Made by a program: the position numbers and the translations under genes. 64,000 bases of DNA. Source: Diplonema japonicum (Eukaryota; Protista; Euglenozoa: Diplonemea). The notes under the pieces were generated by a model. That model saw only the letters and a list, made by a program, of their open reading frames with translations. It was not told the origin of the DNA and did not search any database. Location: positions 434,001 through 498,000 of the forward strand of contig OZ025667.1 of the NCBI GenBank assembly GCA_964019335.1, read 5' to 3'. Within the stretch, counting starts at the first letter, position 1, and the number at the start of each line of letters is the position of its first letter. Of the stretch, positions 1,883 through 49,448 are shown in pieces.

Positions 1883-1968
1883 CTCAAACTGAGTGGTTAA
1901 ATTAGGGACATAGGGACATAGCATCGAAATAGACTAAGTAGTGTAAACAGCCTAATACTAAAGATCAA

Positions 1969-25191: not shown

Positions 25192-25231
25192 AATTCACTA
25201 TGATAGGAACGAAGTGGTAGCAACGATCCGC
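25192..25231 (+). repeat. Dispersed ~40-nt motif A, copy 1
   Basis: AATTCACTATGATAGGAACGAAGTGGTAGCAACGATCCGC, with similar copies at 28466 (+) and 53411 (-). Confidence 0.8.
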
Positions 25232-25978
25232 AAAAAGAAAGGAAAAGAAAGAAAAAAAACAGCCATTTGTACTATTTTTTACTCATTTGTTTTGTCCCCC
25301 CTGTTTTTTTTTTCCCGCTCACTTACTCTTTTTCTACCCCCCTCTTTTCTTCCATTGTTTATTTAATGCACTCTAGTAGTGAAAGATAAGCCGCTAGTCC
25401 ATTATCAGCATCCTAGCAACCGTTGGGTCATGAGCTAGAATGGAGCTCTTTTTTTTTTTTCTTCTTCTTCTTTCTTAATTTTTTTATTGTCACTCGCTAT
25501 GCTAATATGAAAGAAAAAAAGAAGCGAAAAAAGAGAAAAAAAGGAAAATCAAGACACCCGGCTTGTTGTGACCAGTGACTCTTTTTCTTCTTTTTTTCTT
25601 TGTTTTACTTCCCATATTCCTTTCTCTCCCATCTGCCTGTGTTGCTTAAACGCGAATCCCAAAAGTGAGTGCCACCCACAAAACTGATGCCGCGCCATAA
25701 GGCGGCTTTAACAAATAGTTTTTGTCCTACACAAATTATGAAATGAAATGGGGCTTTAGCTGCATATTGCGAAGCACAACCTCCTCCACTGGGCACAAGG
25801 GACCTGTTCATTGGAAAAAGCTTTCTGGTAGAAGGGATTCAGTCTAAACCACAAGGCCCTAGGGGAAGGACTGGACAACTTATTAAGGTTTAGAAGATAA
25901 ACGAATTTAATGACAATGAAAAAAAGGGGGGTAAACCATATTATGACTATTATGTCTTGCTGTTTCTTTTTTTTTTTA

Positions 25979-26550
25979 CGCGCTATATTCGCTAAGTGAC
26001 CCACCAGAACCCCTGAGCTGTAGGTACCCTCTCATCAGGGGAGTTTGCCCGGTCCGGAGTCGTATGATCTGGACCTCGTCCCTCCTACAGAGGGGAGGGA
26101 GTGGGAGACTGTCGCCATTCGTAACGAGGCTGTGATGGCCTGGAGCGTCGTTGCCGTACCTCGCGCGCGTTGCTCCCCTCAGCCATGCCTTCGGCCGCTT
26201 TGTGGACTATGCCTTCGAAAATATTTTCGGCTGAACTACTGGTCAGGAAGATGCTGGCTTCTGGGATCGAACCCTGTTAACCATGTTTTTCAAAGGGAAA
26301 AGTGCCCAGTTGCAAAAGTTTGGCAAAAATGGCCAAAACCCAAAATGGCGACTTCCAAGGTCATTTTGGTTGGCCCCCAATATTTTTTTTTTGGAACTTT
26401 CTTGGAACTCACCGTTCTTTCATGTTCGACATATGGATTTTTTGAAAAAAAAAATTCAATGAACCTTTGGGCATTTTTGACATTTTTTCCCCTATAGCCC
26501 CCTATAACCCCTTTGGGACATAGGGCGGGTCACTTAGCGAATATGGAGCG
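25979..26550. mobile_element. MITE / non-autonomous DNA transposon (~570 bp)
   Basis: Perfect 18-bp inverted repeat ATATTCGCTAAGTGACCC (25985-26002) / GGGTCACTTAGCGAATAT (26527-26544), extending imperfectly outwards. Flanks are TTTA and TTAA. No transposase ORF. Confidence 0.75.
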
Positions 26551-28465
26551 TTAAAAATTGCTCGGCACAAGTTGCATAATAATCTTTTTTGAAAGAAAAA
26601 AAAAACAAGCTTTGTAGAAAAAAAAGGGGGGGGGGAAGGTAAGACATGTGCTTTACACGTTTGTGCACTCTCGATCTGCCTTTCATCTTTTTTTATGTTC
26701 TTACGGGGGGGGGGGGGGGGGGGAAATCATGTTTATGAATATTTGAGTTTATCTCAACGACAACTTTTTAAAAAGAAAAAAAAAACCCCCCCAGAGGAAC
26801 CCACCAAACATCTTGAGCACTAATCTCAAGACATGCTTTATTTTTTATACCCTCAGCCAAGCACATGTTGTACTGTGACACAACGGAGGGGGATAAGCTA
26901 CATTTACTTTCATTCTGATCAACAGTATGGGGACACACCGGAACTTGTACTGGAAGGATGGCGAGTCGAAGGGGAAGAAGAAGCATGGCTTCCTTTTGAA
27001 AACTGGCGCCAGCATCTTAGATTCCGACTTTATGGGCAGCACATCACTGAGGGGAAAAGAGCGTCTGGACACCGCCTCCCTCGTGAGGCCGCATAATGCA
27101 TGCCGCCTACCATTTCTTTTTCTTATTTATTTCCTCTCTAGCTTGTCTTTACCATTCTTAAAAGAAGAAAGGTGAAGGGGCCGTGAAATATGTATTCATA
27201 GAATGCCTGGCAAACTATTCAAGAGGAGTGCATTCCTTACATCTGTACTAGTGTTCCACATAACGAAGAGGCTCAGGACAGTTGCCAGCACAGTTGTCTT
27301 TAATGAAAGATCTGTCTGCAACGAAAGAGGAGAAGAAGAAAAAGAAAAGGAAAGAATAAGAAGGCTTTACTTGACCTTGGGGCAGGCTAAAAGGGGCTGT
27401 GAGAGACAAATCCATATGAAGCAAAGAATAAAAAACAGGGTGGATGGAGTTTAAAAAAAAAGGGGGGGGGGCAGCCTCCGTATGAAGATCAGGAAATTCT
27501 AGATTCACCCCTTTCCATGAGTGACACGAGTTGATTCTCTTTGGGAAGGGGAAAAAAAAGAGAAAAAAAGCCTAAAGGGCCAAGTGAAGTTAAAAAAAAA
27601 AAAGGAGAGATGCAAACTGCTGGGCCCATGAAAAGAAACAATATCTTGGTAGGAAAGAAACAAGACGTACATCCTGGGGAGCGAGAAAAAAAGGTGAAAA
27701 AAAGGAAGGATCCTTCCAGATGCATTCGTGTATGAGACAAGAGGGTGTGGCTGCATAAGCAGGAGATGCCTCATGAGTGCTTTATGATAAGAGCCCCCAA
27801 CACAGGCAACACAAAAAATATTTGCTTTCCGAAATCGAAACCCGGTGTCAAGTTACCGCCAAAAATGAGACATTATTTTGTTTGCTGGTTATGCTTTCCC
27901 CCCCCCCCCCCCGTTTCCTCTAGTCCCAAGTAAGATATGTCGCATAGACCGCATTCATCATGGGCCCATTGTTAAAACTGGCCCTCCGCGTCTGCCTTGA
28001 TGGATAAGTCCATGTGGCATGTGGACATACGCTTGTAATGTGCCCCAAGTGAGAAAAGTATTGAACGACATGGAGATGATTGAATAAAAGGGGGAAGGGG
28101 GGGGACACTAAAACCCCAAAGAGAAAGAGGGAGTGAGCAGGTTAAGAGGGTACAGAGTTGCTATTTCCGTCCTCAACATTTTTCTTCTTCTTCCTTTGGT
28201 CTTACAAAAAGGGGAAGGTTGGCAACGTACGGGTTATAAACTTCTCCAGGTTTCTACCGGCACATACAACAACCGGTCCCTGATTTTTTTTTGGTCCTTT
28301 ATCGATTGGCAGGCGTAGTAGAGGCATGTTGACATTACTGGCTGTCGAGAGACCCTATTTCTCTCTTTATTTAGTCCTAAGGTATGGGGGAGGGCCGAAA
28401 GTGAAACAGTCCTGGGGGGCTTTTCCCGAAGGCCACAACAGAAAAACTTCCCAAAAATGAAAAAA

Positions 28466-33175: not shown

Positions 33176-35665
33176 CTAAGCTTGTGAAAAGGTGACGTAG
33201 TACTCGTTCAGGCAAGAGCCTAGAACTTGGTAGATGCCGCAGCAGTTCGTGAGGCCACACCCTGCCGCATAATCGATAAGGGTCTTTGGTTCGCAAAGGT
33301 CAGTCACTTCATAGCCAGCTGCCTTGTTTACAGCAGTACAGTTCTCAAGGACAAACTCCTTGCGTTTTTTCAAGGACTCGGAGGTGAGCCGTGTGTAGTC
33401 AACGGGTGTTGGGCTGCACTCCTTGACTATCAAGATACCGTTGGCGGTGAGCATTGCGGCAGCCTGCTCGATCTCCCTACGCGCTTCATCTTTTTTGACC
33501 GTAGACAAGACGTCCACCAAGCAGATCACGTTGTACGCCTGTTCACCCTCACTTTTAGTAGGCCGGCCTACTGTGATGTCAACACCTTCTATCTCTGGAA
33601 TGTCAGCAGAGGGCCGCAGTTGGTGTTTAAGCCTCCTCGAAAGTTTGTTACTCATGGCAGGGACACCACGCCTCCATACTAACACCGAGCTGAGATCAGC
33701 TTTACTCTTTTTCCTCTTCTCTGTCGCAGGCGTAAAGTTTGCATAAACAACCCTAGGGTCCGGTAAACCAAGCTCCTTGTAGTTTACGGCAGCATCCTCC
33801 GTCTGGTAGTCGAACATGTCGTTGGAAGCCCATGTGGACAGTTTGGCCTTGCCGTAAATACCTTCCCCCTTGTCACGCAGTGCTTTCAGTTTATCGACAC
33901 GTGCTTTCCTTTCCTTGATATACTCTTCAGAGTAGTCCTTGCTATACCTCGTACCACCAAACTCGTAATCCTTCAGCTTGACATTCAACTTCTGTAACGT
34001 GACGTAGGTTAAGGGTATGTTCAGCTCATGTAGGCACACACGAATCAGGTGCACAGCAAAGCCAAGCCACCAGCTCTCCCTGTCGGAGGAAGGACAGTCA
34101 GACATAGACTCAACTCCGTTCTTTGCTTCAAACATTGCAGCGGACACATCGCAAAGGTTGGTAAAGGCCTCTTGCAGAAGCCCCGAGTTGTTCCAGCATA
34201 GCCTTGCTTCTGCACGAGTTTTTGTTTTTCTTGTTACTTTCCAAGCCTTGTCAATTTGATCCAACCAATTTTGTTTCACAGCCACCCACTCCACGATCAG
34301 ATCCTCGCCGAACACTTTGCGCAGAACTAGCAAATCACATAGCCCATCATCTTTCTTTTTTTGGACTTCTTCCTCGAGGCTTTGGATCATCTGCAACGAA
34401 AAACCACCGCTGTACTTGTGACCGGACTCTCTTGCCTTCATTTTTATCGCCGCTATGTCGAAGTACTCCCTCGCTTCCTCATACTCTTTCTCGTCGCGGA
34501 CATCACATTGTTTCGGGTCGTAGTCCTTGAACTCCAGAATGCTGAGGATGCTTTCGCTGTTCTCAGCCAGTCCAGTCGCGATCGGCAGCATGTTGGGGCG
34601 TGCTTCCGCCCAGCCCAGAATCATACTCACGACGTCCATCTTCGGTGGGTTGTAGCGGTTCCTTTCGTTGACGCTTTCTAGAGAGTCGTCCACGGTGCCG
34701 ATCTTCTGTTTCTTGTTCGCATCGTTGCGCTTCTTTCTGTCCTGGTAGAGATCCATGCACGTCGCCTCGCCTAATCTGAATCTGTAGTACAAAACACACG
34801 TTAGTCTGTTCCAGTTGCCCTTGATAGGTTCCACTTCTGTGTTTGCATGCTGGCAGTGCGTGTCGAAGAGCAAGAAGTCACCTGGTCTCAGGTCAACACA
34901 GACGCGTGCCTCAGGCAAACCAAGCATCACACCATTGTAGTGTCCATCAATCACTGTAATGAGCCCAAAGCCGTGATCAAAGTCCCCACAGTCAGTGTGT
35001 GCAGCAGTCCTGAAGTCCCTGTTCACAGTCATCGTAGAAAAGACAGATTTTCTAATGCGCACGGGGTCTGGGATCGCCTTGTTTTGTAGCTTCCACTTTC
35101 CCGGCAGTGCTTTCTTGTAGAATTCGTTTGCATACTCCACCAAAGGGAAACACTTCACCCAGTCCTTGAAATGGTCGTGTGTGAATGACGTCTTCCTGCA
35201 TTTGTAAATCTGCGGTGTCCCAGCATAGTCGTAGTAACCGCTAATCCCGCTCTGCGGCGGGCGTCCACCATTGGTGAATGACCTCAGATCCGAAGACTTA
35301 GGAACCTTAGAGAGGATCTCTTTGGCTGTGGAACAGACCTTGTCGGGCACAGCATTCTTAATGAACACAGCTAATAAGTTGCCATCTGCATCTCTGATGT
35401 GGTGGTCCGACGTAATAACAGCTTTGTAGTGCAGTTTGTCGTAATAAGGGTGCTTGGTGGTTGCTTCTTCCCATGGAATGTATGATCTCACTGTGCGCTT
35501 AGTTCCTGCTTTGCTTTCCTTATTTTCTGTCTTCTGTACCTTTGGCGGAGGTTCGAAGGACTTCAAGAGCTCCCCATCCACCACCTCAGGCAACGTGCGC
35601 TGTCTTTTTGCTTCTTTCCTTCTCTCTAGCTCCTCCTTAGCCTTCTTTCCTTGCTTGCTAGACAT
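33176..35665 (-). CDS. JBP1: J-binding protein 1: thymidine hydroxylase (TET/JBP 2OG-Fe) + J-binding domain
   Basis: SGISGYYDY, CRKTSFT, FSTMTVNRDFRTAAHTDCGD (HxD), HANTE, RLTCVLYYR. The J-binding helix KLNVKLKDYEFGGTRY retains the Asp equivalent to Leishmania D525. Start is MSSKQ (ATG 35665); the upstream ORF part is poly(A)-derived. Confidence 0.95.
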   Translation of the reverse strand: MSSKQGKKAKEELERRKEAKRQRTLPEVVDGELLKSFEPPPKVQKTENKESKAGTKRTVRSYIPWEEATTKHPYYDKLHYKAVITSDHHIRDADGNLLAVFIKNAVPDKVCSTAKEILSKVPKSSDLRSFTNGGRPPQSGISGYYDYAGTPQIYKCRKTSFTHDHFKDWVKCFPLVEYANEFYKKALPGKWKLQNKAIPDPVRIRKSVFSTMTVNRDFRTAAHTDCGDFDHGFGLITVIDGHYNGVMLGLPEARVCVDLRPGDFLLFDTHCQHANTEVEPIKGNWNRLTCVLYYRFRLGEATCMDLYQDRKKRNDANKKQKIGTVDDSLESVNERNRYNPPKMDVVSMILGWAEARPNMLPIATGLAENSESILSILEFKDYDPKQCDVRDEKEYEEAREYFDIAAIKMKARESGHKYSGGFSLQMIQSLEEEVQKKKDDGLCDLLVLRKVFGEDLIVEWVAVKQNWLDQIDKAWKVTRKTKTRAEARLCWNNSGLLQEAFTNLCDVSAAMFEAKNGVESMSDCPSSDRESWWLGFAVHLIRVCLHELNIPLTYVTLQKLNVKLKDYEFGGTRYSKDYSEEYIKERKARVDKLKALRDKGEGIYGKAKLSTWASNDMFDYQTEDAAVNYKELGLPDPRVVYANFTPATEKRKKSKADLSSVLVWRRGVPAMSNKLSRRLKHQLRPSADIPEIEGVDITVGRPTKSEGEQAYNVICLVDVLSTVKKDEARREIEQAAAMLTANGILIVKECSPTPVDYTRLTSESLKKRKEFVLENCTAVNKAAGYEVTDLCEPKTLIDYAAGCGLTNCCGIYQVLGSCLNEYYVTFSQA

Positions 35666-35720
35666 TGTTGACCTGTATGAGGTTGCAATAGTAATGAAGT
35701 CGGAAATCAAATCAAGTGAT

Positions 35721-35762
<42 letters not shown>

Positions 35763-35767
<5 letters not shown>

Positions 35768-36515
35768 AATTGTTCTTCTTCTTTTTTGCAGGCTGGGAAC
35801 TACTTGCCTCAATAGCGCGTTTCTTCTGTCTTTTCTTCCGTGCTTTCTCGTCCCTTTTCTCTTGTGCTTTTACGGACCTCCCCGACTTTCTGAACTTCGG
35901 CTGGACTTCCATATCAATATCGCCTTCCGCGTCACCGTCCTTTCCCTCGCCCTTGTCCTCTGTTGTTTGTTTCTCCTCTTTTGTAACCTTCTTCTTTAAT
36001 ATTCGTGACGGGTCATATGGATCGCCGGGTTGCAGCTCTGCTGGCTGTCTCGTGAGTCCATGTCGTGGGTCTTTTACACCTGGCGCACTTTTCCGCATGT
36101 TCGTTATGAGATGGCCTATGAAGCCTGGCTTTCTGCAGGTGTATGCGGTGTGACCTTCGGTGGCGCAGAGTGTGCAATGCTGAAGGCCATCTGACCACCA
36201 GTCCTTCTCACCTTCGTACTTCAGAGGTTTGCACGACAGGTGCGAGCAGGAGCCACATGTTGAACATAACGATATTTCGTTCCCATGGAATACGTCATCA
36301 GAAACTTCACTTCCATTGTACAAGTCTCCTAAACAGGCCCCTTCACGGTGCCGTCCCAAACAGGTCCAACAGCTCTCCGCTTTTTTCCTCGTCTCACACC
36401 TTGCATGACCCACCTCATGACACGACGTGCACACCCTGTTCGGGCAATCTCGTTTTACATGGCTGCCCCCACACAAATAGCACAGTGCACCATCGTCCGC
36501 TCGGAAGTACCTCAT
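35763..36515 (-). CDS. CCHC zinc-knuckle protein, Air1/ZCCHC7-like (TRAMP component)
   Basis: RYF followed by about five C-x2-C-x3-4-H-x3-4-C knuckles and a basic C-terminus. Confidence 0.65.
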
Positions 36516-36596: not shown

Positions 36597-39500
36597 TTAA
36601 AACGTTTTTCGTTTTTCGCTCTTAGGATCTTTCATCCTCAGATCAACGAGTTTAACCTTTGGGTCAAGATCAGCATATTGCCGCAGGACGTTGCTCTTCA
36701 CGGGCTTCCTTACAGGCGGGAGCTGCGAACGGGGCTGTTTTTGAGGCAATGAAGGGTTTACTTCTTTATAAGGTTTCGCTTTCACTTTTGGCCTATGGGT
36801 GTGGGGGGGCAAATCCTTCACTGAGAAGCTTAAACAATGGCTGGACGGTGGTGGTTTGTTCAGGTATTCCTCAAAAAGGCACACCATATAATGTCCAGGG
36901 TCGAGAGGCGCCCTCAGTTGGTCCGTGAGCATCCCTCTAGGGAGTTTGGCTTTCCAGCCCCTGTACCGAGCAACTGGACTGCCGCCATCTTCAGAACGTG
37001 AGAATACGAGGAAGTGTGCATGTTCTCTTCTGGTGTGTGGATCTGGATACCGCCACATCACCGGAAGGCTCTCATTTGGGGCATAAGTTGTTTGGTTAGA
37101 TTTAAAGCACAGCTTGAAGGAGCTTGTCATCAAATATCGCTGTGACACCGCGTGCGTTAGTGCTGCAATTGAGCGCTTTGCGGCAAATCTTGTGTCATGC
37201 GGAACATCTGCGACACAAGCTGCCTCGTCCTCCACTTGTTTCGTTGGCTCTTCGGAGAGAAAAGTTTTCAAGCTTTTTCGACCTCGCACGTTATTCCTTT
37301 TGGCATCAAAAGCTTCGGTGACTCTGTTCAACCTATGGAAGTAGAATGTGGACTCCTCGGCAGTCCCCCATACTTTACTAATGCTGTAAGCAGCACTTAA
37401 TGTGTCCATGCGCTCTCTCAGTTTCAGAATTGCCACTTGTGACGGCAGCTCCTCTACTGTATTGATAATATCCCAGAAATCAATGAGCAGCCTCTTGTCA
37501 GTGCTTGAGAACTGCAGCGCGGTGACAGGGTCGCTGAACTCCGCTGTCAAAACACGTGCGACGTTTCTCTTCAGGAGCCACATCGTTGTCTTTGTGGAGG
37601 ACTCGCCGCTCCCAATCACCATCCTGCGTATGAGGCCCACCATGTCTTTGTCCCTCGAGGGCTGAACGAGTATGGTTGCCACCACGTTGAGGTCCAGGTC
37701 TTCGCAACCAGTAAGGAGCAATTGCAGTTCGCTACGGTAGCACTCGCCCGCCGCAAACAGGTGCTGCCGCCTCTCAGTTTCGTCAAGGCTTGTTTTTGCG
37801 AGCTTGACATGACAAGCTGCAAGAGGTCGCAGTGTGTGTATCAAGAACGGAGTTTTGGCTCCTATTTTCAGGAAAACGTAATCCTTCACTTGCTGGTGTA
37901 GAGCGAGATACTGGATGGGTTCAAAGTACGGACCTGCTTCTGCAAGGTACACCAATGCATAAAGAGCAGGACGCAAATCGGTGTCGCACCACTCACTTAG
38001 TGGTAGTTTAGAGTTGATAGTGTCGATGGTTCTCTTTAACCATGTGATGAATAGCTCCGCTGCTCTTCTGATATCTTGTTGGCTTTGTTGTAACGCGAGC
38101 TTTCCGTAACTAAACATCATGCTGCAGAATATACCACAGTTCCTTGGGAGAATCTTCTCCAACACGGGCAGCAACCTTGCCAGCAGTGACGGCTTTCGCC
38201 TCAGGGTTGCTAACTGCCACAACAGTCGTATATACTCAGGGTGTGTCTCTGACAGCTCGCTGCGCACCGTCCTGAGAGCATCAATGTACACATCCTCGTT
38301 CTTCCACTCTGCTTGCGACACAAGATCTGCGTAGTCAGACTTCAGCTCTGCCAGTCTCAAGCCTTTCCGGGCTCGCAGCTTGATAGCAGTTTCAAATACA
38401 TCATCTGATTCAACATGCATCGGAATGTGCTCCAGCACAGTCACTGCCATAGCACTCACAGCTTCAACATGCGGTAAGCTCCCCTCACCGAAATCTTCCC
38501 CCGCTTTCTCGACAACACTGCTCAGCAGTGTACCTGACTCGCGAACGCTTTCATGCTTTGCGAGCTTTCCAAGTGAAGTTGAATACCGCAGTATCTGCAA
38601 TGTGTTGCAGTTCGGGTTGTCTTTAGAATTCCCCCTAAGCTCAAGCGCTTTCTTCAGCGTGCTTGTTGCGTTGGGGTCACCCGTGGCAAGTTGTATCTGG
38701 ATCATCGCATCGTAAAAAGGGAGAAGCCTGCCCACCTGATCTGTGATAACACTTGGGCCTGTGCGCACCCCTGCCAAGGTAAGCCTCTTGCGTTGCGTAA
38801 TCCGTTTCATACAGCTCTGCAAGTCACCTTGCACAGCATAGACTCTAGGGGGAAGGTTCAGTGCAGGCACGACGCTCTTCGTACGTATTACTTCTGTGCA
38901 GTTAACACTAAGAGCGAGAGAAGGATCCCGAAAGAGTTTAATACACAGTAAAGCACACGCTCTTTTACGTAGTAGTAGGCTGTCCGTTGGTGATATGTGT
39001 TCCTCTACAACTTCCTTGCCCTTCATAGGCACATTATTAGGATCAAGGAGATTCAATGAATCACTGTTTTTTTTTATGTGAAGCAAATCTGACCTTTTAA
39101 AGGGTTTTGCACCAAATTTGTTCATCAGTTTCGGAGCAATGACTTCTTCCCAAAATGCGGTGTCGCTGTTGTTAAGACGACTCAAACCAGCGCCGAGGAA
39201 CTTTGCCAATAAGTCTATCGCAATGCTAGAGTACCTCTCAGAATGGTGCCTGCACCATAGTGGTATCTCCCCTTTGCGCTGCTGCTCTCTCACAGCTTCT
39301 TTAAGACATCTTGACGCCATCTCGACTCTGACAACATCAAGCTGCACTGATTCAGGGCCCAATGCAGCTTCAAGCACTGAGGCAACACGTCCCAGACACT
39401 TCATTCCCACCCCTGCAGTGTGCATAAAAGTGCGAAGCCCGTTTGGACTTATGTCGTTACTGTTTGCCCATTCCAAAGCTGACTGGTGGATGTTCACCGT

Positions 39501-40532
39501 AAAGAAGACAGACAAAGATGTGAGCAGCTCATCAGACCTCAGCTCAGCCTCAGGAGATTTACACCAAGCAGTGTGTGCATCAGAACTGAGTGGCACCTCA
39601 CTCATAGCCCACATGAACTCAGGTCGTATACGTTGTGTGATTACACCTGTCTTGAGGGCCATGCGTTTTGCCCGCCCAGCTAAGTTCTTTGCATCAACAA
39701 CAGGATCGTTTGATGGTGGTAAGTATCTCAACCCTTCTTGGAATTCCGACCAAAGGGAACACGGAAATAAACCTGATACTCGTCTGATATAAAGCCTGTC
39801 GTCAACAGGAGACTTATGGCATTCGATGGTGTGGCACCCACCAGAGACATCAGCACCTGAACACCCAGTCCGCAGGCCTAATTTCTCAGCAAGCAATCGA
39901 ATAAGCATACGCATCTCTTCTGTGCCCTGCAAGCACTCAGGAGGTGTTCCCACCACAACAGTGGCCTCATTTGTAGCACCATACACAAGTGTCTCATGAC
40001 CAAGGCCAACATCACACTCCACATGAAACACATGCCCTTGGAAGTAGATGAGACATGTTAGAGGCACATGGACATGTTCTACAGACACAGACACCACAGC
40101 TCGCAGAGACAACAGATCCATAGTACTGGTTTGTTCTGCAGCCATATGTGATCCAAAAGCCTGTACTCTCTGAGGGCTATTAATTGCAGTGAACCACATA
40201 CCCTTTTCTAACAGTCTGTCAGGAACACTTGACATGCACTCCTTGCTTGCCCACCTCCGATAAATATCAGGTATGTTGTTGACAGCAAGTGTGCTGAAGT
40301 CTGCAGCAACCTTTTCATCCCATCCTGTACCATCACCTACACACATTTGAAAAGCCTCATTGTATTGTCGAGCATCTTGACACCCAGGTGACCACCCCAA
40401 TGCAGGGTGAATATACTTGGGAAGGCACTCATCCCCAGTAAGTGGTATCCTGAAATCCTTAACCACTGAACTCAAGTCGCTCACATCAGATTGCATCAGT
40501 GCCACTTTTCTAAAAAGATTATTTTCAGACAT
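36597..40532 (-). CDS. Clu (clustered mitochondria)-domain/TPR-like protein
   Basis: IECHKSPVDDRLYI..SGLFP, RIRPEF, PLSSDAHT, MHTAGVGMKCLGRV, VEMASRCLK resemble CLU/CLU-central motifs, followed by a helical C-terminal region. Start set at MSENN (40532) because the upstream ORF part lies in a repeat. Confidence 0.7.
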   Translation of the reverse strand: MSENNLFRKVALMQSDVSDLSSVVKDFRIPLTGDECLPKYIHPALGWSPGCQDARQYNEAFQMCVGDGTGWDEKVAADFSTLAVNNIPDIYRRWASKECMSSVPDRLLEKGMWFTAINSPQRVQAFGSHMAAEQTSTMDLLSLRAVVSVSVEHVHVPLTCLIYFQGHVFHVECDVGLGHETLVYGATNEATVVVGTPPECLQGTEEMRMLIRLLAEKLGLRTGCSGADVSGGCHTIECHKSPVDDRLYIRRVSGLFPCSLWSEFQEGLRYLPPSNDPVVDAKNLAGRAKRMALKTGVITQRIRPEFMWAMSEVPLSSDAHTAWCKSPEAELRSDELLTSLSVFFTVNIHQSALEWANSNDISPNGLRTFMHTAGVGMKCLGRVASVLEAALGPESVQLDVVRVEMASRCLKEAVREQQRKGEIPLWCRHHSERYSSIAIDLLAKFLGAGLSRLNNSDTAFWEEVIAPKLMNKFGAKPFKRSDLLHIKKNSDSLNLLDPNNVPMKGKEVVEEHISPTDSLLLRKRACALLCIKLFRDPSLALSVNCTEVIRTKSVVPALNLPPRVYAVQGDLQSCMKRITQRKRLTLAGVRTGPSVITDQVGRLLPFYDAMIQIQLATGDPNATSTLKKALELRGNSKDNPNCNTLQILRYSTSLGKLAKHESVRESGTLLSSVVEKAGEDFGEGSLPHVEAVSAMAVTVLEHIPMHVESDDVFETAIKLRARKGLRLAELKSDYADLVSQAEWKNEDVYIDALRTVRSELSETHPEYIRLLWQLATLRRKPSLLARLLPVLEKILPRNCGIFCSMMFSYGKLALQQSQQDIRRAAELFITWLKRTIDTINSKLPLSEWCDTDLRPALYALVYLAEAGPYFEPIQYLALHQQVKDYVFLKIGAKTPFLIHTLRPLAACHVKLAKTSLDETERRQHLFAAGECYRSELQLLLTGCEDLDLNVVATILVQPSRDKDMVGLIRRMVIGSGESSTKTTMWLLKRNVARVLTAEFSDPVTALQFSSTDKRLLIDFWDIINTVEELPSQVAILKLRERMDTLSAAYSISKVWGTAEESTFYFHRLNRVTEAFDAKRNNVRGRKSLKTFLSEEPTKQVEDEAACVADVPHDTRFAAKRSIAALTHAVSQRYLMTSSFKLCFKSNQTTYAPNESLPVMWRYPDPHTRREHAHFLVFSRSEDGGSPVARYRGWKAKLPRGMLTDQLRAPLDPGHYMVCLFEEYLNKPPPSSHCLSFSVKDLPPHTHRPKVKAKPYKEVNPSLPQKQPRSQLPPVRKPVKSNVLRQYADLDPKVKLVDLRMKDPKSEKRKTF

Positions 40533-40574
40533 ATTGGGACCATCTGTAAGTAGTGTAAACAAAAAGGGAAAGAC

Positions 40575-40900
40575 AAATATATGAGTTAAAGGAGGCTGGT
40601 GTTGGTGGCACTCTGCACAAGAACTGTCTACTTGATTACAGGGGGTGTGCCACGGCCGAGTTGTAGCTTCTTCTGCATTCCACGTCGTGTCCTTAATGCG
40701 TGCAGTGTACAGCTCAACCCCAGCCGGTGCATCCCAGGTAACCAAGATTCTGCACTTGTGCAGTTTGCTGCCTGTTTGTCACCCTGAGCATCTGCATTAT
40801 GTTCTTCCATTTGGGCACTACCAGTGATGACCGACGAGGAGGTCAACAGCAAACAACACATCTGATGTTTTTCTTATATTTTCATGCTATCCCCACCACC
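40575..40900. repeat. Dispersed repeat family C, with partial copies at 42425-42575 (inverted) and 46845-47128 (permuted)
   Basis: Shared ATATGAGTTAAAGGAGGCTGGTGTTGG...CTTCTGCATTC and CAGCTCAACCCC...TTTTCATG-x-TATCCCCACCACC segments. Confidence 0.85.
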
Positions 40901-40952
40901 AATACAATTGTTGGAGAACTACCTTAGGGTACTACAATATATGAGTTCCACT

Positions 40953-41492
40953 TCATCCACACAATTTAGGTCTGGGAAATGGTGAGGGGCCTAGAAACCA
41001 GTACACAATGCAAGCAGTATAAAGAGCAACAGGTATGAAGTTGACCACTTTAGGTTTTTGAGCTGGAGGGTCATCATTGAGTAACTGCTCTGGTGCTGAT
41101 GATTTGTATTCACGTGAGACACGCAAAAACAAGTAAAAGGGCACTGTGACAGAAATGGCAACACTGAATGAAAGGATGAGGAAGGCAGTATAGGTGTAGA
41201 TTGAGAACCCCATTTGGAAAAAGTCATTACCCATCCATATAAGAATGGCAACTCCACAAAACAGTAAGTCGAAGGAGAAGCTAGAAGATGATGTTGATGC
41301 AAAGAGGTCACAGAAGAAGCTACCAGATGCATAGTAGTAGTACAGGTGTGTGCTAACATAGCCACCAATCCACATAAGAAGGTACATAGTCATCTTCAGC
41401 TTTCCCCAGAAGTCAACACCCACCAGGAATTCACATGGGTCACTAAACATTGGATCAACTCCAACACGCAATGAGTACCACTTTACTGCCAT
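40953..41492 (-). CDS. DUF2834-like small integral membrane protein
   Basis: FFCDLFAS...FSFDLL...SVAISVTVPFYLFLR pattern with several hydrophobic helices. Surviving CpGs are mostly in Arg codons, which supports real coding. Confidence 0.6.
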   Translation of the reverse strand: MAVKWYSLRVGVDPMFSDPCEFLVGVDFWGKLKMTMYLLMWIGGYVSTHLYYYYASGSFFCDLFASTSSSSFSFDLLFCGVAILIWMGNDFFQMGFSIYTYTAFLILSFSVAISVTVPFYLFLRVSREYKSSAPEQLLNDDPPAQKPKVVNFIPVALYTACIVYWFLGPSPFPRPKLCG

Positions 41493-41717
41493 TACTTTAT
41501 ATTGAGGGTTATCTGCTTATTGATTAGGTGTAAGAATGTGAAAACAAGACAATACCAATTAATAAATAATAACTATTGATTTATGAAAAATAAAGTGGAC
41601 TTTATTTCCATGGCTGATAATCTGTCCCAAGGGGGTGATAACAAGGCAGCTGAAGCAATGCAGAAGCCTGAAGTAATAGTCCTGACTCATCCCAACAATC
41701 ACAACTACGTCTCAAAG

Positions 41718-42317
41718 CAGTGTTGGTCCAGACCCTTGAGGGACTCAGGTGACTCCAAGGGACAGGACAGGAGTCCCCTGAAATTTTCAGGGGTCTGGAG
41801 GGGACTGGAGGGACTCAAGGGACTCAGGGGTCTGGGGGGGACTCTTGGGACCAAAAAATTTCTTTGTGTTTTTTGTGTCACAAAGGCCCAAATTTAGGCT
41901 GGGGCTTGCACTTTTTTGGTACTTTTGGTTTCAAAGGTTCAAAAAAAGAGGTCCTAGGTTTGGGTGGGATGTGAGGCAAGGCTCATACTACCTTGTTGTG
42001 ACTATGTATAAAAAAAAAAAAAAAAAAAAAAAAGAGACATTTAAGGGTACCTGTGGTATGTGACAGGATGCCTGAAGAGTCTCAATCTATCTTTTGATTG
42101 AACCTTTCTGTTGTGGTGTGGCCTTCAGCCCCTTGTTCACCCTCCTCAGTACCTTAGGTATGAAACCCTCAACCGAGTTGGTAAGGACACAATAGTTGTA
42201 CAGTTGTTTCTCAAGGATGTGGCAGGTTGCCAGGGAGGTGAATACCAGTCTAGAGGAGTAGCCCCTTATAGAGACTGGTGGTCTGAGGGGTCTGGCCCAC
42301 AAACCACCCCAACACTG
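41718..42317. mobile_element. Degenerate hAT-like non-autonomous element
   Basis: Ends CAGTGTTGG / CCAACACTG with subterminal GGGACTC/GGGGTCTG repeats. The right part is an inverted match to 47500-47665. No TSD seen. Confidence 0.45.
42034..42075 (+). repeat. Dispersed hairpin motif B, copy 2 (CpG-decayed)
   Basis: GAGACATTTAAGGGTACCTGTGGTATGTGACAGGATGCCTGA after a long A-tract. Both CGs of the other copies are TG here. Confidence 0.85.
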
Positions 42318-43591
42318 CAAATTTTCGACACACATGATGTATGCAACACAGGGTGCACAACAGCACATGCATGGGGGTGCTGACTGTTGGTAAAATAAAA
42401 AAAAAAAAAAAACTTTTATCTTCTTTTTCAGGTGGTGGGGATAACATGAAAATATAAGAAAAACATCAGATGTGTTGTTCACTGTTGACCTCCTCATCTG
42501 TCATCACTGAGCAAACCACACAAGTGCAGAATCTTAGTTACCTGGGGCACCCTGGCTGGGGTTAAGCTGAACACCACAATGGCCTGTTTTCCATGAAGTA
42601 ATAGGGGGTTTCCATTAAATAATATGCCTTGGTAGGCCAATTTTTTCCTTGGTTCAGTTCCCAGTGGGGCTACTTTTTCCTCTCAGTTTGCTAATTTCCC
42701 CCCAGGTTCAGCTCAATTGGCCAACTTTTGCCTCAGCTCAGTTCCAAGTTGGACTACTTTTTCCTCCCAATTTGCCCACTTTTGGCTAGGCCTTGTTCCC
42801 AGTTTCTGGGGTAACTCTTCTGTGGGTAAGGGTAACTTAGCAGCTTACCCAAGCTCCCCAAATGACTTCAAAATACCAAAGCAGCAGAAAAAAAGGAGCC
42901 AGTGGCCATGCCAGGTATGGGAAGGCCTGATTAGAGATGGTGACAGTGGCAATGCCAAGGAGGAAAACAACTTGTATTGTAACCTTTGTAACCCCTCTCT
43001 TGTTGTACCCCTTGTCACCCTGTTGTGCCCTTCATGGTGAAGTAATTTCAGAGTGTTATGAAATAAAACCACTTACCTACTGCCAAGTAATGCTTTACCA
43101 ACCTTGAGGTAATGGTAAAGTCATTACTTGTTGGTAAATAGCTTTTATTTCACTCTTCATCATTTTCTTCTCACTCACTAGGGGCCTCATTATTTAATGC
43201 GAAATGGCCATTATTTAACTAGTTAAAAAAAAAGAATAAATGTAACCCAAGGTAAAACTTGTAGATAAAGACCCTGCAAATGTGAGTTGCTCACCCCCCT
43301 ACCCAAAAGTGAGCAAAGTGTCTGTTAAAGAAAAGCAAGCCAGGATAGACTTGTGTACCCTTTTTTTGCTCCTCTTCACATTCACCCACCCAGGCCCCAC
43401 CCACCCCTACCCCTACCTGAGGCTAGGGAGGGAGAAAAAGAAAGGAGAGGGCTTGGCCAGCCAAAAAAAAAAGAGGTTTATTTAAAATAAAAAAAAAAAA
43501 TGAGATTTTGCAGTTAAATAATGGCCCTTCAGAGTGAAAAAATGGGTCTTGTCATAGAAAAAAATGCACCCAACCCCTTGAAAAATTTTTT

Positions 43592-44850
43592 TGGGGTGGG
43601 GGTATTTTGACTATTTTTGGTCATCTGAGGCCATTCCAGCCCTTAAAAGTGGGAATAAGTGCTTTTCTTCCCCTTTAAATGCCATGGAAAAATAACTACC
43701 CTGTATTACCTTAGGAAAATCCCCAAAAAGCTGACCTGTGTGAAAAAAAACAGCAGTGAAAGCAGGAAGAGTGAGTGACAATTCAATTAGGTAACCACAG
43801 CTGGGAGACCTACCTAGACCTATTAAAAACACCTTAAAAACCCATTTCTGCAAACCAAAAAGTTCAGAAAGGTGTTTAGGTGGAATACACATCTCTAAAC
43901 TATATTCTGAAGTAAAAAGTAAGTAAAAATCCAAAAATTTCAGGGGGGCAACTCATTCTCATAACAACACTGGGAGGGTAAAAAAATAACTTTTTTTGAA
44001 CACCCAATTTGGTCCTGAAAATGGAATTCTGAACAGCAATCACATTGGCGGCCTCCCAGTTGTCCCTGCTGCCCCTCTCTAGGGCCTGCAGGTGGATGAT
44101 GGCTTGCTCAGTGAGGCAGACAAGTTGAGTTTCATTGATTGAGCTCCACTGGGTCTTGACAGCCAATGGCCATTACGATCTCCTGCAGGTCCTTGACCCA
44201 CATGCCTGCCTCCCAAGCATGGGGCCCAATGGTCAGATGCCTGTACTGCATGGTGATGTTGGCCACCACCATGGGGTGCTTGCCCGGCTCTAACCACACC
44301 CACTTCAATGGCTCTAAGGCTTGCAGACCCCATAGTGGTGGGGAGTCTGCTGAGTGTCAGGGTTGTCCTGTGGTGAGTCATCAGCACTTGGCTTGTTGCC
44401 CTCCGAGTCTGTGGAAGACTGTGAGGCTAGGTGTCTGTGCCTTCTGTTGTGGATTCTGGGGAGGTTGACCCTAGTCATACCCTCAGTGCTTGGCCCTTGA
44501 TCAGCTCAGTTGGCTGAGAGTTCCAGCTGATGTCCCAACCCAAGGTGTGAACTCTCCACCTGGTCCCTAACCGTGGGGAGCAGCTTAGAGATGGCCCTTT
44601 GAACAGCCTGCTCAACAAGCCAGTCAACCCTGGTTCTCTTAGGGGTTGCCTCACTCCAGCCTGGCATCACTCTTCACTGCTTTCACTGCTGTTTTTTTTC
44701 ACACAGGTCAGCTTTTTGGGGATTTTCCTAAGGTAATACAGGGTAGCTATTTCACCATGGCATTTAAAGGGGAAGTAAGGCACTTATTCCCACTTTTAAG
44801 GGCTGGAATGGCCTCAGATGGCCAAAAATAGTCAAAATACCCCCACCCCA
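43592..44850. mobile_element. Element bounded by ~185-bp inverted repeats enclosing a decayed GC-rich coding remnant
   Basis: 43592-43774 is the near-identical reverse complement of 44667-44850. The interior 44030-44660 is GC-rich with broken reading frames. Confidence 0.65.
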
Positions 44851-46376
44851 CAGTGTTGTTACAGGAAAAAACCCAGGGGGGTGGGGGGGCAGGGCAGTGT
44901 TGTTACGGGAAAAAACCTGGGGGTGTGGTCACCTAATCGAATTTTTTTTCTCTTCAAGGAATCAACTTTCTTCCAAAAATTTAAGATTCATATCATTCTA
45001 GCACCTTATAACTCACTTTTCAGGAAACACACAATTTCACACACATTTATTCTTTAGTTTTTTTCTGAACCTATTTAATTTTTAAACCTAATAAAGAGTA
45101 AATCTCCTAATCAAAACTTTTTAGTCCCAGTGTTGCCAAAATGGGTTGAAAATTAAAGTACCCAGCTGTGGTTACTTAATCAAAAAAGAATTTAATAGCC
45201 CATTTAACCTATGTATTCAAACCTTTTACCTCTTACTTGCTTTTTTTTTTTTCTTGGAATTTATTTCACTTTTTTGGTTCTTTGCCCAGCAATAGCAGTT
45301 GGTCTTTCTTCTTGGCTGCAATCTCCTTCACCTCCAGTGCTTTGCCAACAATAGCAGTGTGTCAGTGGTGGCACCTTCTTCACCTCAATCCTGGGACCTT
45401 TCAACCCTAATATTGCCAGCCATGCCCCCATTCCACCCAAGGTAGGCTATCAGGTAGTCTTTTCTGACAGATTTTCTGGTTCTATTGGGGTGTTTTGTTG
45501 GGTTAGGTTATTTTTTAAAACAACCTGCCAATAAAGTACAGTAAAAACAGGGGGGGGAAATACAAAGAATGAGAAAGGTAAGTTATAAAGGAAAGAAAAA
45601 TGACAGATGGACCATTACTAGGCCAAGTACAGGTGCCCTTTGTGAAAAAAATCTTATTTTCTGAGGTAAAATATCACTTTTCAGGTGTTTTTGACAATTT
45701 TTTTTGTGAGGAAAAAAATTCTTTGGGCCCTTTTTTTTTGACCCATGACCATCTCACTTTCACTATTAGCCTCATTAAGGTCTAGAATAGGTATTTTTGA
45801 GGGAAAAAAAATTATTTTTTGAGAAAAAATCAATTTAAGGGTTTAAGGGTTTTTGGCCACTTTTTTTGGGAGGAAAAACAATTTTTTTGGACACCTTTTT
45901 TTTTTTTTTCCAGCACCCCATGCACCCAATAAAGTACAGTAAAAAAAGGGGGGTAAATACAAAGAATGAGAAGGGTAAGTCATAAAGGAGAGAAAACCAA
46001 CAGATAGACCATTATTAGGCCTGATATAGGTACCCTTATGGAAAAAAATCAATTTTTCTGAGGTAAAAAACCACTTTTCAGGTGTTTTTGACCACTTGTT
46101 CATGTGAAAAATAATTTTTTTTGGGCACCTTTTTTTTTGACCCCCCAAACATCTCACTTTCACCCCACTTCACTAAAAGCCTCTATTAAGGCCTAGGATA
46201 GGTACTTTTGAGAAAAAAAATCAATTTTTGGGTGTCTTTGACAACTTTTTTTGGGTGGAAAAAAATTTTTTTTGGACACTATAAAAAAATTTTTTTTTTG
46301 CCCCCCCACCCCCTGGATTTGCCCCCCAAAGTAAATGAAAATCTCAGGGGGGCAACCCATTCTCGTAACAACACTG
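44851..46376. mobile_element. hAT-like non-autonomous element with CAGTGTTGTTAC(G) termini and internal ~400-bp tandem duplication
   Basis: CAGTGTTGTTAC at 44851 and 44895, CGTAACAACACTG ending at 46376. Internal units start CCAATAAAGTACAGTAAAAA at 45528 and 45926. Confidence 0.6.
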
Positions 46377-46542
46377 GTTGGTCAGTCCCATCCCATCCCC
46401 TAAAACGGAATACAGGCCTGGATGGGACTCATGGGACTCACAGGACTCATGGGACTCTCCCCAACACTTGTCATTATTTTTGATAGTTTTGCAACTTTTT
46501 TTTTTTTTTTTTTTTTTTTCCCTTTCAACCATGGGCCTTTGG

Positions 46543-46576
<34 letters not shown>

Positions 46577-47308
46577 TGGAAAAAAAAAAGAGAAAAAAAT
46601 CCTTGATTTTTTTTTGACATACATGATGTGTTTACCTTTTTTTTTTTTTTTTTTTTTTTTTTTCCTTCTTTTTTTCTTGTCTTCTCACATTTTTTCACAC
46701 ACCTAAGCCAAGCTGTTGTTTCTGCTTTCCACATCAAATGTTGTATTTGGATGTAATAGAAAAGGGGGGAAATAATAAATAATATGTACAAGAGGGGGGT
46801 ATGTTTATACAACCTGTGTAAACAGATCGGTTCCTTGCTTTCAGCACCATGCCCCTAATGTGCAATGTACAGCTCAACCCCTGCATTGCACTGCCTGTTT
46901 GTTGCACATATTTTCATGTTTTCCCCCCCCCACCTGAAAATAATAGAAAGGAGATAAATATATGAGTTAAAGGAGGCTGGTGTTGGCAGCACCCTGCACA
47001 AGAACTGTCTACTTGATTACAGGGGGTGCACCACAGCCGAGTTGTAGCTTCTTCTGCATTCTGTGTCATTTCCTTAATCACCATGGCCAGGATGTAGCTT
47101 CTTCTGCATTCCACATCATGCCCTTAATCAGTGTTGTTATGAGCAGTGTTGTTACGAGAATGGGTTGCCCCCCTGAGATTTTCAGGGGGGCATGGGGGGG
47201 CAAATCAGGGGGGTGGGGGGGGCAGGGGGGCAAAAAAATTTTTTTTTATAGTGTCCAAAAAATTTTTTTTTCCACCCAAAAAAAGTTGTCAAAGACACCC
47301 AAAAATTG
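46222..47308. repeat. ~160-bp inverted pair (two ends of the CAGTGTTGTTACG element facing each other)
   Basis: 46222-46376 is the reverse complement of 47144-47308. A third, shorter end lies at 43935-43972. Confidence 0.8.
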
Positions 47309-48353
47309 GATGAAGTAAAAAAAAATTCAATTAGGAAACCATGGCTAGGACCCCTATTTCTAGAGGGATCGACTTCTTTAAGGGTGATTTTTACCCCCCT
47401 TTTTTTTTCTAGGTTTTAAGTTTTAGCTATTCCTATGTCAATTTCACCCATTTTCCCTGTGCAGCATAGTGGTACATGTTATAACACGTGTTATAACACA
47501 TGCTGTGTTGTGCACCCTGTGTTGCATACATTGTGTGGAACATCAGGTATGTGAAATATGATGTAAAATATGTCACACACCACATGGTGTGGTCGAAAAT
47601 TCACAGTGTTGGGATGGTTTGTGGGCCAGACCTGCCAGACCCCTCAGACCCCTCAGACCAGTCGTTTTTTTACCAGGTTCCAGACTGGTCTGGTCCAGAC
47701 CCCTCAGACCCCTACTGTCCACCTGAGCACCCTCAAAACCGACTTTTTTGAATTTTTTAAAAATCATTGAATCAATTTTTGTGAATGAAAAAGGGGTTGT
47801 GAAAATTTAAGCCACTTGGAAAACTCTTGTTTTTATTTTCTTTCCCTTTCTTTCACTTTTGAACCTAAAGGTTTAAAAAAAGATTTTCAAGTCCCCAGGT
47901 CCCAGGGACCTTGCCAACAGGAGGTGCCATGTGAAGGCAATGAGTTGGTTTTCCTTTCCGATCCTAAATATAATAGCCACTTATTCAATAGTCTAAAGCA
48001 GCCAATCTGACATCAGGTTCAAGTGCTGAGTAGATCACCTATCAGGTTGTTGACATGTGGTGAAGTGATTGTGGGGAGGATGTGGTGCTGGGATAAGTCA
48101 CTAATCCAAAGAGGGTGAGAGTCCTGTACATCCAGCAAGCCATTGTCTGTATCTTCACTGTTTGCAAGCCACGTTCTGTATGGATGGAGTTTAGAGGGTC
48201 TCTTGTGTGATAGTGACATTATAGATGCAGACTTTGACTCACATTGCTAAAGTGCTATCTTGACATGTGTGTATTTCTCACAACCAATACCATTTCATTT
48301 CATCAGAAACTGCACGCCTTTTACATCAACTATCATACAATAGTAAAGCTCAA

Positions 48354-49448
48354 ATGAAATGGTCGATGTTATTAATGTTCCTGGCATTTTGCTTACTTGC
48401 TAGTGCTGAGGAATCATGTATAAATAATGAGCTTGAAAGTCGGCTTGTAGTGCAGTACCCAGGGGAGGCTGGTGAAGAAGCAGTGGGAGATGAATTGCAG
48501 CGTGCCAGGCAGTATGCCTTAGCACTGCAGTACCACAAGCGTGTGCACAAGAGGGAAGGCACAGTACTGTCATTGATCTCAGTTGCAACTGACCTGAAAG
48601 GACTAGGGGAATACAACAAGGCTTTGGAGCTGCTGCAGCAGCTACCTCTGACTGTGCGCAGTGTAAGGCAGCTAGCTTTATTCCGAGCTTCTCTCTACGA
48701 CTGCAGCGGCAATCACAAAGCAGCCTACAATATCATGAAAAAGGTCCCTGACAAGGACCTCCATGAAAAGCTCACCGTTCTTGACTATCTTAGCAGAGTG
48801 AAGGCAAAGGGATATGCAGAGAAGCATGAGGCCTTACGATCAGAGATCATAAGGGAATATGAACTAGATGGAGACCAACTCGTGCCAAACTACATCAAGG
48901 GACTTGCAGCTTCACCTTCACACGACTGGCCAACAGAGTACCCTTTTATGGGATCTGCAGTGGAGATTATGAGACGCTACTCTTCAAGGTTATTCGCAGA
49001 ATTCCGACAGCTTGAGAAGAAGGGGCTCTTAGAAACAGACGAAGAATGCCTGTCGTCGGTGTGGAGAAGATACGAAGTCTCTCCTGGGTGGAGACGGATC
49101 GCAGATTGCAAGGAATCGCAAGCCGTGGTTGCTTGTAATATGCTGCAAGAGATAGCAGTTCTCAACACGATCAGAGTAATACGTGGAAGCTACAGCAGCA
49201 TAGAGCCAAATGCGCACATCGCACCGCACTATGGCTGGACGAACGGGCAGCTTAAATTTCACATCGGGCTTCGCATTCCTGGGCCATGTGCAAGCATCAG
49301 GGTACACGATAGGTACCTCAACTGGGTAGAGGGCGATGTGATTTTGATCGACGATTCCTTCAACCACGAAGCATGGAACAACTGCACAGAGACTCGCACC
49401 GTGTTCCAGGTTGTGGTACAACACCCTGATGTTGGCATGCCACACTGA
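48354..49448 (+). CDS. Secretory aspartyl/asparaginyl beta-hydroxylase-family 2OG-Fe dioxygenase with TPR-like region
   Basis: Signal peptide MKWSMLLMFLAFCLLASA. Motifs SSIEPNAHIAPHYG, LKFHIGL-x-IP, WVEGDVILIDDSFNHEAWN, R-x-VF. Confidence 0.88.
   Translation: MKWSMLLMFLAFCLLASAEESCINNELESRLVVQYPGEAGEEAVGDELQRARQYALALQYHKRVHKREGTVLSLISVATDLKGLGEYNKALELLQQLPLTVRSVRQLALFRASLYDCSGNHKAAYNIMKKVPDKDLHEKLTVLDYLSRVKAKGYAEKHEALRSEIIREYELDGDQLVPNYIKGLAASPSHDWPTEYPFMGSAVEIMRRYSSRLFAEFRQLEKKGLLETDEECLSSVWRRYEVSPGWRRIADCKESQAVVACNMLQEIAVLNTIRVIRGSYSSIEPNAHIAPHYGWTNGQLKFHIGLRIPGPCASIRVHDRYLNWVEGDVILIDDSFNHEAWNNCTETRTVFQVVVQHPDVGMPH

Follow-up and report, generated by a model that had tools for sequence, protein, structure and literature searches.

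A 64-kb window of the genome of the marine diplonemid Diplonema japonicum contains a 9-kb stretch in which ∼90% of the CG dinucleotides have been lost to TG or CA. This stretch, referred to below as the desert, is a sharply bounded, CpG-poor island in a CpG-replete genome, and it is located on a divergent strand switch. Alignments of related sequences indicate that the depletion is a CpG-specific decay (C>T and G>A) that took place in situ on both strands. The desert is probably a heritably CpG-methylated domain that is defined by its position, maintained by the methyltransferase DNMT5, and decaying via deamination of 5-methylcytosine (5mC). The footprint would then provide a map, drawn from sequence only, of the places at which methylation of CpG has been at work in a diplonemid genome. 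This action appears to be confined to a bounded block that heads two polycistronic gene arrays, and to affect neither transposons generally nor gene bodies.

Bulk 5mC in Diplonema and DNMT5 in euglenozoans are already known. Both 5mC and base J have been reported for bulk Diplonema DNA (van Leeuwen 1998, cited through the PMC10161547 supplement), and the genome of D. papillatum has co-oriented gene arrays, spliced leader trans-splicing, and five DNMT homologs (PMC10161547). The DNMT5 orthologs of euglenozoans carry an SNF2 domain, as described in a paper that includes no euglenozoan methylome (PMC12344493). The note on the D. japonicum YPF1604 genome reports an assembly of 62.30 Mb in 118 pseudomolecules and is silent on methylation, strand switches, and centromeres (PMC13598402). 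In the literature searched, no paper describes CpG-decay domains in diplonemids or presents a methylome of any euglenozoan; the papers give DNMT genes and bulk Diplonema 5mC, without the location of the mark.

Extent of the CpG-poor domain

The window lies on contig C20 (728 kb), and positions are those of the window unless a contig is named. The DNA scanned comprises 244 kb of C20, made up of the window and the 180 kb upstream (C20:254001-434000). Long open reading frames (ORFs) are located on the minus strand up to position 41492, and those beginning at position 48267 are on the plus strand, which places a divergent strand switch under the desert. This switch is the sole divergent one within the scanned DNA and the only one examined directly (n = 1).

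The observed-to-expected ratio (o/e) of CpG is 0.6–0.9 nearly throughout the window, with a window-wide value of 0.66 in a sliding count, and the genome otherwise has an o/e of ∼0.75. The desert occupies positions 39900–48900, over which the o/e drops to 0.02–0.25. Calculated for 1-kb intervals, the o/e is 0.31 at 39.5–40.5 kb, falls to 0.02–0.14 across the core (41.0–47.5 kb), is again 0.31 at 48–49 kb, and reaches 0.84 at 49–50 kb. The interval of 39.9–48.6 kb (C20:473.9-482.6 kb) contains 45 CpGs, whereas the 9-kb flanks contain 422 and 401. At a resolution of 300 bp, CpG drops abruptly at the left edge, with 12 CpGs in 39600–39899 vs 2 in 39900–40199, and the right edge is gradual, with CpG climbing over 48.3–48.9 kb. 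A transition zone with an o/e of 0.38–0.68 precedes the left edge (39000–39899). At the edges of the desert, the o/e values of TpG and CpA rise to as much as ∼1.55–1.59. All 2-kb windows with a CpG o/e below 0.4 in the scanned DNA fall in this one block.

A reading of the stretch made from its letters alone, called the sequence-only reading below, had proposed a localized CpG depletion and had set beforehand a comparison with DNA of matched G+C content (GC) as a check that could refute it. The depletion is real. The 43 one-kb windows elsewhere in the 244 kb with a GC of 0.47 or less have a mean o/e of 0.68 and a minimum of 0.37, whereas the one-kb windows inside the desert have a mean of 0.10 and a maximum of 0.23. 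DNA outside ORFs gives the same picture, with an o/e of 0.083 inside the desert (GC 0.417) vs 0.695 outside (GC 0.434). In this non-ORF DNA of the desert, 25 CpGs are observed where 209 are expected (Poisson P ∼1e-58).

Substitution spectrum, position, and selection

The kind of change that removed the CpGs is most apparent in a 630-bp fragment of a tyrosine-recombinase element, found on the plus strand at 44040–44669. This fragment was aligned to six copies located elsewhere in the genome (99%–100% identity), whose consensus holds 62 CpGs that all six copies keep. Only 5 of the 62 survive in the desert copy, and the 57 others (92%) are now TG or CA. Its 70 substitutions include 57 CG>TG or CG>CA changes, 4 C>T or G>A changes outside CpG, and 8 of other kinds. 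Thus, 57 of 122 CpG positions have changed compared to 4 of 291 non-CpG C/G positions (Fisher P 1e-30), which bears out the expectation of the sequence-only reading that substitutions between repeat copies are enriched at ancestral CG, an expectation that it had named as a possible point of refutation. With 92% of CpGs lost at a non-CpG divergence of 2.4%, the per-site rate excess is ∼50-fold. The TG (30) and CA (24) outcomes are interspersed along the fragment, indicating that both strands were struck many times independently. The mutational footprint is thus restricted to CpG and two-stranded, as would be the case for a symmetric CpG target.

Other repeat copies show the same direction of change. 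When the desert fragments are set against their paralogs elsewhere on C20, 61 of 82 CpGs have become TG or CA in the desert, and the reverse holds for 2 of 19. A repeat fragment at the left edge (40556–40902) has CpG-keeping copies at 308.8, 314.2, and 320.7 kb of C20 and is partly duplicated within the desert at 46952–47133. The two desert copies differ by reciprocal TG/CA pairs, indicating that the decay came after the duplication. The pairs listed in the sequence-only reading (GGTGGC/GGCAGC, GTGTGCC/GTGCACC, and CAGCAAAC/CAGTGAAC) are present as given. Its internal comparisons hold as well: a motif termed B has both of its CGs decayed at 42.02–42.07 kb when compared to copies at 28.65 and 63.2 kb, and an element at ∼26 kb, whose surroundings have an o/e of 0.69, carries CG-bearing 34-nt terminal inverted repeats.

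Recent insertions are affected too. Two copies of an element that resembles a miniature inverted-repeat transposable element (MITE) flank the 630-bp fragment. Copy 1 (43500–43780, plus strand, 280 bp) is 96% identical to at least 40 genomic copies, and its CpGs have decayed. Copy 2 is inverted (44667–44850, minus strand, 184 bp), is 98%–99% identical to genomic copies, and contains zero CpGs. It has three differences from its family, all of them CG>TG, where the family letters were inferred from contigs of public runs over the partner arm. This copy is young and yet free of CpG, which indicates that the decay acted on recent insertions.

Contigs of four public runs that cover 38–44 kb differ from the window sequence by 26–30 A>G and 26–29 T>C changes, vs 1–3 in the reverse directions. 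Of the listed transitions, 21 of 29 are in a CA<-CG or TG<-CG context. The differing letters come from paralogous repeat copies. The unique parts of the region are identical in three runs, and consequently there are no polymorphisms by which the decay could be dated.

A query of the genome with the intact 630-bp segment retrieved seven copies at 98%–100% identity and a few at 78%–93% (on C25, C77, C15, and C45, along with the desert copy at 87%). The copy at 440.7 kb of C77 is also decayed and resides in DNA with an o/e of 0.33. Of the 32 sites that have decayed in both this and the desert copy, only 17 changed in the same direction, which suggests that the second locus decayed independently. 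We consider the C77 locus to be partial independent evidence for a second domain.

The decay follows position and is independent of repeat family, since paralogous copies elsewhere keep their CpGs. Repeats have an o/e of 0.88 outside the desert vs 0.13 inside. Two indices commonly associated with repeat-induced point mutation (RIP) are also negative. The CpA>TpA bias of RIP would raise TpA/ApT, which is 0.85 in the desert vs 0.80–0.87 in the flanks. It would lower (CpA+TpG)/(ApC+GpT), for which the corresponding values are 1.36 vs 1.20–1.22. A mutator triggered by repeats is disfavored by the CpG-rich repeats elsewhere together with these values. RIP of the Neurospora type was rejected because both indices are negative, identical repeats elsewhere are intact, and none of the five C5-methylase loci described below is of the RID/DNMT4 type.

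Three genes extend into the desert or reside in it, and their CpGs record mutation screened by selection. In Arg CGN codons either transition alters the amino acid, whereas CpGs in the contexts NCG and NNC|G can be changed synonymously. A gene with a CLU domain (36597–40532, minus strand, likely ATG at 40532) leads the long genes of the minus-strand array, and its 5′ 630 nt are in the desert. This part holds 1 synonymous-context CpG where 22 are expected and 4 Arg CGN codons where 8 are expected. Exactly 4 CGs are present in 39961–40500, 3 of them in Arg codons, as had been noted before. A 179-amino-acid gene with a DUF2834 domain match (40953–41492, minus strand) is entirely within the desert and has 1 such CpG vs 20 expected and 3 Arg CGN codons vs 5 expected. 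The first gene of the plus-strand array (48267–49448, plus strand) encodes an Asp/Asn β-hydroxylase domain. Its 5′ 430 nt are in the desert and have 1 vs 14.5 and 6 vs 6.2, respectively, and CpG has recovered by 48.9 kb; a homolog search with this gene identified one relative only.

Pooled over the three genes, 3 CpGs remain in NCG or NNC|G contexts where ∼57 are expected, whereas Arg CGN codons number 13, with an expectation of 20. All three CpG contexts reach 0.6–0.9 of expectation in control genes from the window. The loss of synonymous-context CpGs and the retention of most Arg CGN codons indicate that the genes are under selection and that the depletion reflects mutation pressure. The decay extends 0.6–1.2 kb into the first gene on either side.

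Probable DNA methylation and competing explanations

If 5mC is the source of the decay, then the genome should encode an enzyme that makes it, and the sequence-only reading had predicted a candidate cytosine methyltransferase. A six-frame search of the assembly (62.5 Mb, 132 contigs) with the C5-methylase profile PF00145 yielded five loci above the cut-off and one further weak match. One locus is an intact DNMT5, a 2098-amino-acid ORF on G000:C108 in which the C5-methylase domain is followed by SNF2 (PF00176) and Helicase_C (PF00271) domains. Its best named relatives are DNMT5 proteins of fungi, chytrids, pelagophytes, and diatoms, with E values down to 1e-231. Conserved features include the DNMT5-type motif I (MCSGTE), the catalytic Cys in AGTxC, ENV, the Walker A motif GYGKT, and the Walker B motif DE(Y/F)T.

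A second enzyme of 495 amino acids (L001, G000:C74:153156-157004; ORF 1063-2550, plus strand) has bacterial M.HhaI as its closest solved relative (E 3e-38). It carries a 146-amino-acid N-terminal extension, and its gene is located in CpG-rich nuclear DNA. This protein is a candidate de novo methylase, or may be the product of a horizontally acquired gene as has been suggested for D. papillatum. The remaining three loci encode DNMT2-like proteins, and no gene of the RID/DNMT4 type is found among the five. Profile searches also identified four chromodomain loci and two loci of the uracil-DNA glycosylase superfamily elsewhere in the genome.

A mechanism consistent with these observations can be proposed. 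The 9 kb between the diverging arrays, comprising a transposon nest, a small gene, and the 5′ portions of the two flanking genes, would form a chromatin domain that is methylated now or was until very recently. Its CpGs would be methylated on both strands, and the mark would be copied at each division, most likely by DNMT5 as an ATP-dependent, CpG-specific methylase; the M.HhaI-like enzyme could be the one that establishes it. Deamination of 5mC to thymine would cause CG>TG and CG>CA changes to accumulate ∼50 times faster than other substitutions, and CpGs would be lost unless shielded by selection on the amino acid. The mark would be placed by position, not by sequence family. We speculate that, where polycistronic transcription covers nearly the whole genome, methylation comes to lie on the few stretches that RNA polymerase II does not cross, which would be the cores of divergent switches and subtelomeres.

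The sequence-only reading had likewise called for a locus-defined CpG methylation system. The parts of that proposal that stand are a bounded, CpG-specific decay of both strands, its dependence on position, its reach of 0.6–1.2 kb into genes, and the presence of DNMT5. From the footprint and the genes encoded, we infer a causal role for 5mC, the identity of the enzyme as DNMT5, and methylation of the domain that continues to the present.

Several observations weigh against a DNMT5-maintained methylation domain. The rate ratio of ∼50 exceeds the CpG/non-CpG ratio of mammals, which is ∼10- to 15-fold, and thus something beyond spontaneous deamination, perhaps enzymatic, may contribute. Six-frame genome searches gave no match to the SRA domain of the UHRF1 type, a weak negative with a profile that matched in 1 of 14 control genomes, and no match to Pre-SET (SUV39-type) or MBD domains, which are uninformative negatives since these profiles matched in 0 of 14. 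There is no detectable chromodomain in DNMT5. With these proteins unmatched, the targeting route used in Cryptococcus is not evident. Finally, 5mC is usually repressive, and yet the domain covers the presumed start of two gene arrays.

An enzyme might instead have caused the mutations directly, for example a C5-methyltransferase that deaminates its CpG target in a process like RIP but specific for CpG. The very high rate ratio would be accommodated in this way, as would the MITE copy that has lost all its CpGs without other changes. However, hypermutation of this kind should not have spared the six nearly identical copies that keep all 62 CpGs, the other repeats outside the desert, or a 28.6-kb repetitive tract with an o/e of 0.9, and it should not have struck the unique coding DNA of the desert. 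The interspersed TG and CA form no strand-coherent blocks, the RIP indices are negative, and a RID/DNMT4-type gene is missing from the five loci. We judge this explanation to be decidedly improbable. Lower still is the chance that the desert is a fossil, in that the domain was once methylated and the mark is since gone. Sequence footprints record only history, and the 45 CpGs left in 8.7 kb are few carriers for a mark. Nevertheless, the youngest insertions (the MITE copies, at 96%–99% identity to their family) are stripped of CpG as well, and DNMT5 is intact with conserved catalytic motifs; selection is not expected to retain a 2098-amino-acid enzyme without a substrate. A purely compositional origin, in which foreign or AT-rich DNA never held CpGs, has next to no prospect of being correct. 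The GC of the core is indeed lower (0.35–0.45), but this account is refuted by the o/e of 0.68 in GC-matched DNA, by paralogs in which ancestral CGs are seen to be replaced by TG or CA, and by the depletion of native coding sequence.

One further explanation would add to the methylation hypothesis rather than replace it. The desert could be a centromere or centromere-like heterochromatin, with methylation and transposons following from that identity. A gene-free transposon nest is positioned exactly at the strand switch, the 244 kb scanned of the 728-kb contig hold no other desert, and the AT-rich element of the nest and the MITE occur within a few kb of each other on C82, C66, C18, C77, and C9. 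Moreover, 5mC that depends on Dnmt5 marks centromeres in Cryptococcus, and trypanosome centromeres are also found at strand switches packed with degenerate retroelements. However, the 40 matches of the AT-rich element, spread over 37 contigs, are what chance would give for 132 contigs, and we regard a centromere as rather unlikely. The strand switch, the transposon nest, and the possible centromere coincide at the desert and are inseparable here.

Comparison with known methylation and mutation systems

Trypanosomatid strand switches are marked by base J, H3.V, and H2A.Z. To our knowledge, published surveys of trypanosomatids find only DNMT6 and little or no 5mC. The sequence-only reading had contrasted the desert with these organisms, a contrast that is inapplicable: D. 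japonicum is a diplonemid and not a trypanosomatid, and the best named relative of its JBP1 protein is from D. papillatum (39% identity). The resemblance to trypanosomatid switches, and to the strand-switch centromeres of Trypanosoma cruzi, lies in the euglenozoan polycistronic arrays, a JBP1 gene 4 kb from the desert, and the degenerate transposons that fill the switch. Aside from the host, the difference is that the footprint is that of a modified C in CpG and not of a modified T. It is possible, though on balance we doubt it, that CpG methylation serves diplonemids as a positional chromosome mark. Blocks methylated by DNMT5 would in that case define divergent switches as boundaries or start platforms of polycistrons, or as centromeres, and would do the job that the sister kinetoplastids, having lost DNMT5, give to base J and histone variants.

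A close parallel is found in Cryptococcus neoformans, where Dnmt5 maintains CG methylation at transposon-rich centromeres and subtelomeres (Huff and Zilberman 2014; Catania et al., 10.1101/149385). Both systems have a DNMT5 that joins a C5-methylase to an SNF2 ATPase, a symmetric target restricted to CpG (as suggested by the footprint in the diplonemid), and discrete gene-poor blocks of transposon relics, with genes elsewhere untouched. In contrast to the fungal case, the diplonemid DNMT5 lacks a detectable chromodomain, and its genome gave no SUV39-type Pre-SET or SRA match. Furthermore, the diplonemid block lies at a divergent switch of polycistronic arrays, covers the first genes at their 5′ ends, and is known from a mutational footprint.

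The CpG depletion of vertebrate genomes is similar in its reciprocal CG>TG/CA changes, its excess of TG and CA, and the survival of CpG only at sites under selective protection. Unlike in vertebrates, the diplonemid has a depleted island of 9 kb in CpG-replete DNA, which is the inverse of a vertebrate CpG island, and its apparent rate excess is larger. RIP in Neurospora and other fungi shares with the desert the C>T hypermutation of transposon copies and some leakage into adjoining unique DNA, but in the diplonemid the repeats elsewhere are intact, the context is CpG rather than CpA, both indices gave a negative result, and the five C5-methylase loci include none of the RID type.

If such domains prove to be present genome-wide, several questions become testable. 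These include how a DNMT5 system is targeted without its usual partners, histone H3 lysine 9 methylation and UHRF1, how a repressive mark coexists with presumed transcription start regions, and whether such blocks are centromeres. CpG o/e could also be used as an annotation aid for the cores of strand switches and for silent domains.

Repeats and genes around the strand switch

The gene-free core of the divergent switch (41493–48266) measures 6.8 kb and is a nest in which fragments represent at least four families of repeats. Within this interval there are no tRNA genes and no Rfam families above the gathering threshold; only sub-threshold matches occur, on an A/T homopolymer hairpin. This hairpin corresponds to a quasi-palindrome of long homopolymers at 46468–46700, with runs of ∼25–32 T and A on either side, and the Rfam matches that it attracts are spurious.

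In addition to the elements described above, the nest contains a copy of a high-copy family of ∼600 bp (42578–43150). It is 90%–91% identical to more than 35 copies elsewhere, and the differences listed are mostly CA<-CG and TG<-CG. An AT-rich element of 1.08 kb with a GC of ∼0.35 is located at 45300–46377. The 40 matches scored, of its 165 first-look candidates, (88%–97% identity) are on 37 other contigs, and several of the matches are a few kb from contig ends (C86, C88, C19, C92, C60, and C35). The occurrence of one such element per contig was considered as a centromere signature and is uninformative, because 40 random matches on 132 contigs would fall on ∼35 contigs by chance.

The intact relatives of the 630-bp fragment (L008-L013; for example, L010:1840-3303, plus strand) constitute a CpG-rich mobile element that encodes a tyrosine recombinase with a Phage_integrase domain (E 5e-9). 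The six copies are 99%–100% identical over 627 bp, and the element looks recently active. DIRS, Crypton, and VIPER are possible assignments for it.

Machinery for base J is encoded in the window, where an intact JBP1 gene of the thymine dioxygenase type (33176–35812, minus strand) lies ∼4 kb to the left of the desert edge. The predicted protein has Tet_JBP and DB_JBP1 domains and is 64% identical to a EukProt transcriptome protein; the D. papillatum relative mentioned above is named 'base J-binding protein 1 A'.

Upstream of the window, scaffold gaps of 200 N are present at C20:401538 and C20:272335. CpG is normal at an apparent convergent switch (C20:397-401 kb); because this switch adjoins the gap at 401538, it is possibly a scaffolding join and hence serves only as a weak control. 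The 28.6-kb tract (C20:401738-430317; L031-L034) is internally repetitive, has a GC of 0.58, and lies on the minus-strand array; it may represent a single giant gene of repetitive structure or a family of tandem genes. Within the window, G runs of 10–18 bases (at 25064, 26626, 26706, and 27462) are present in AT-rich intergenic DNA at 25050–27480, where CpG is normal.

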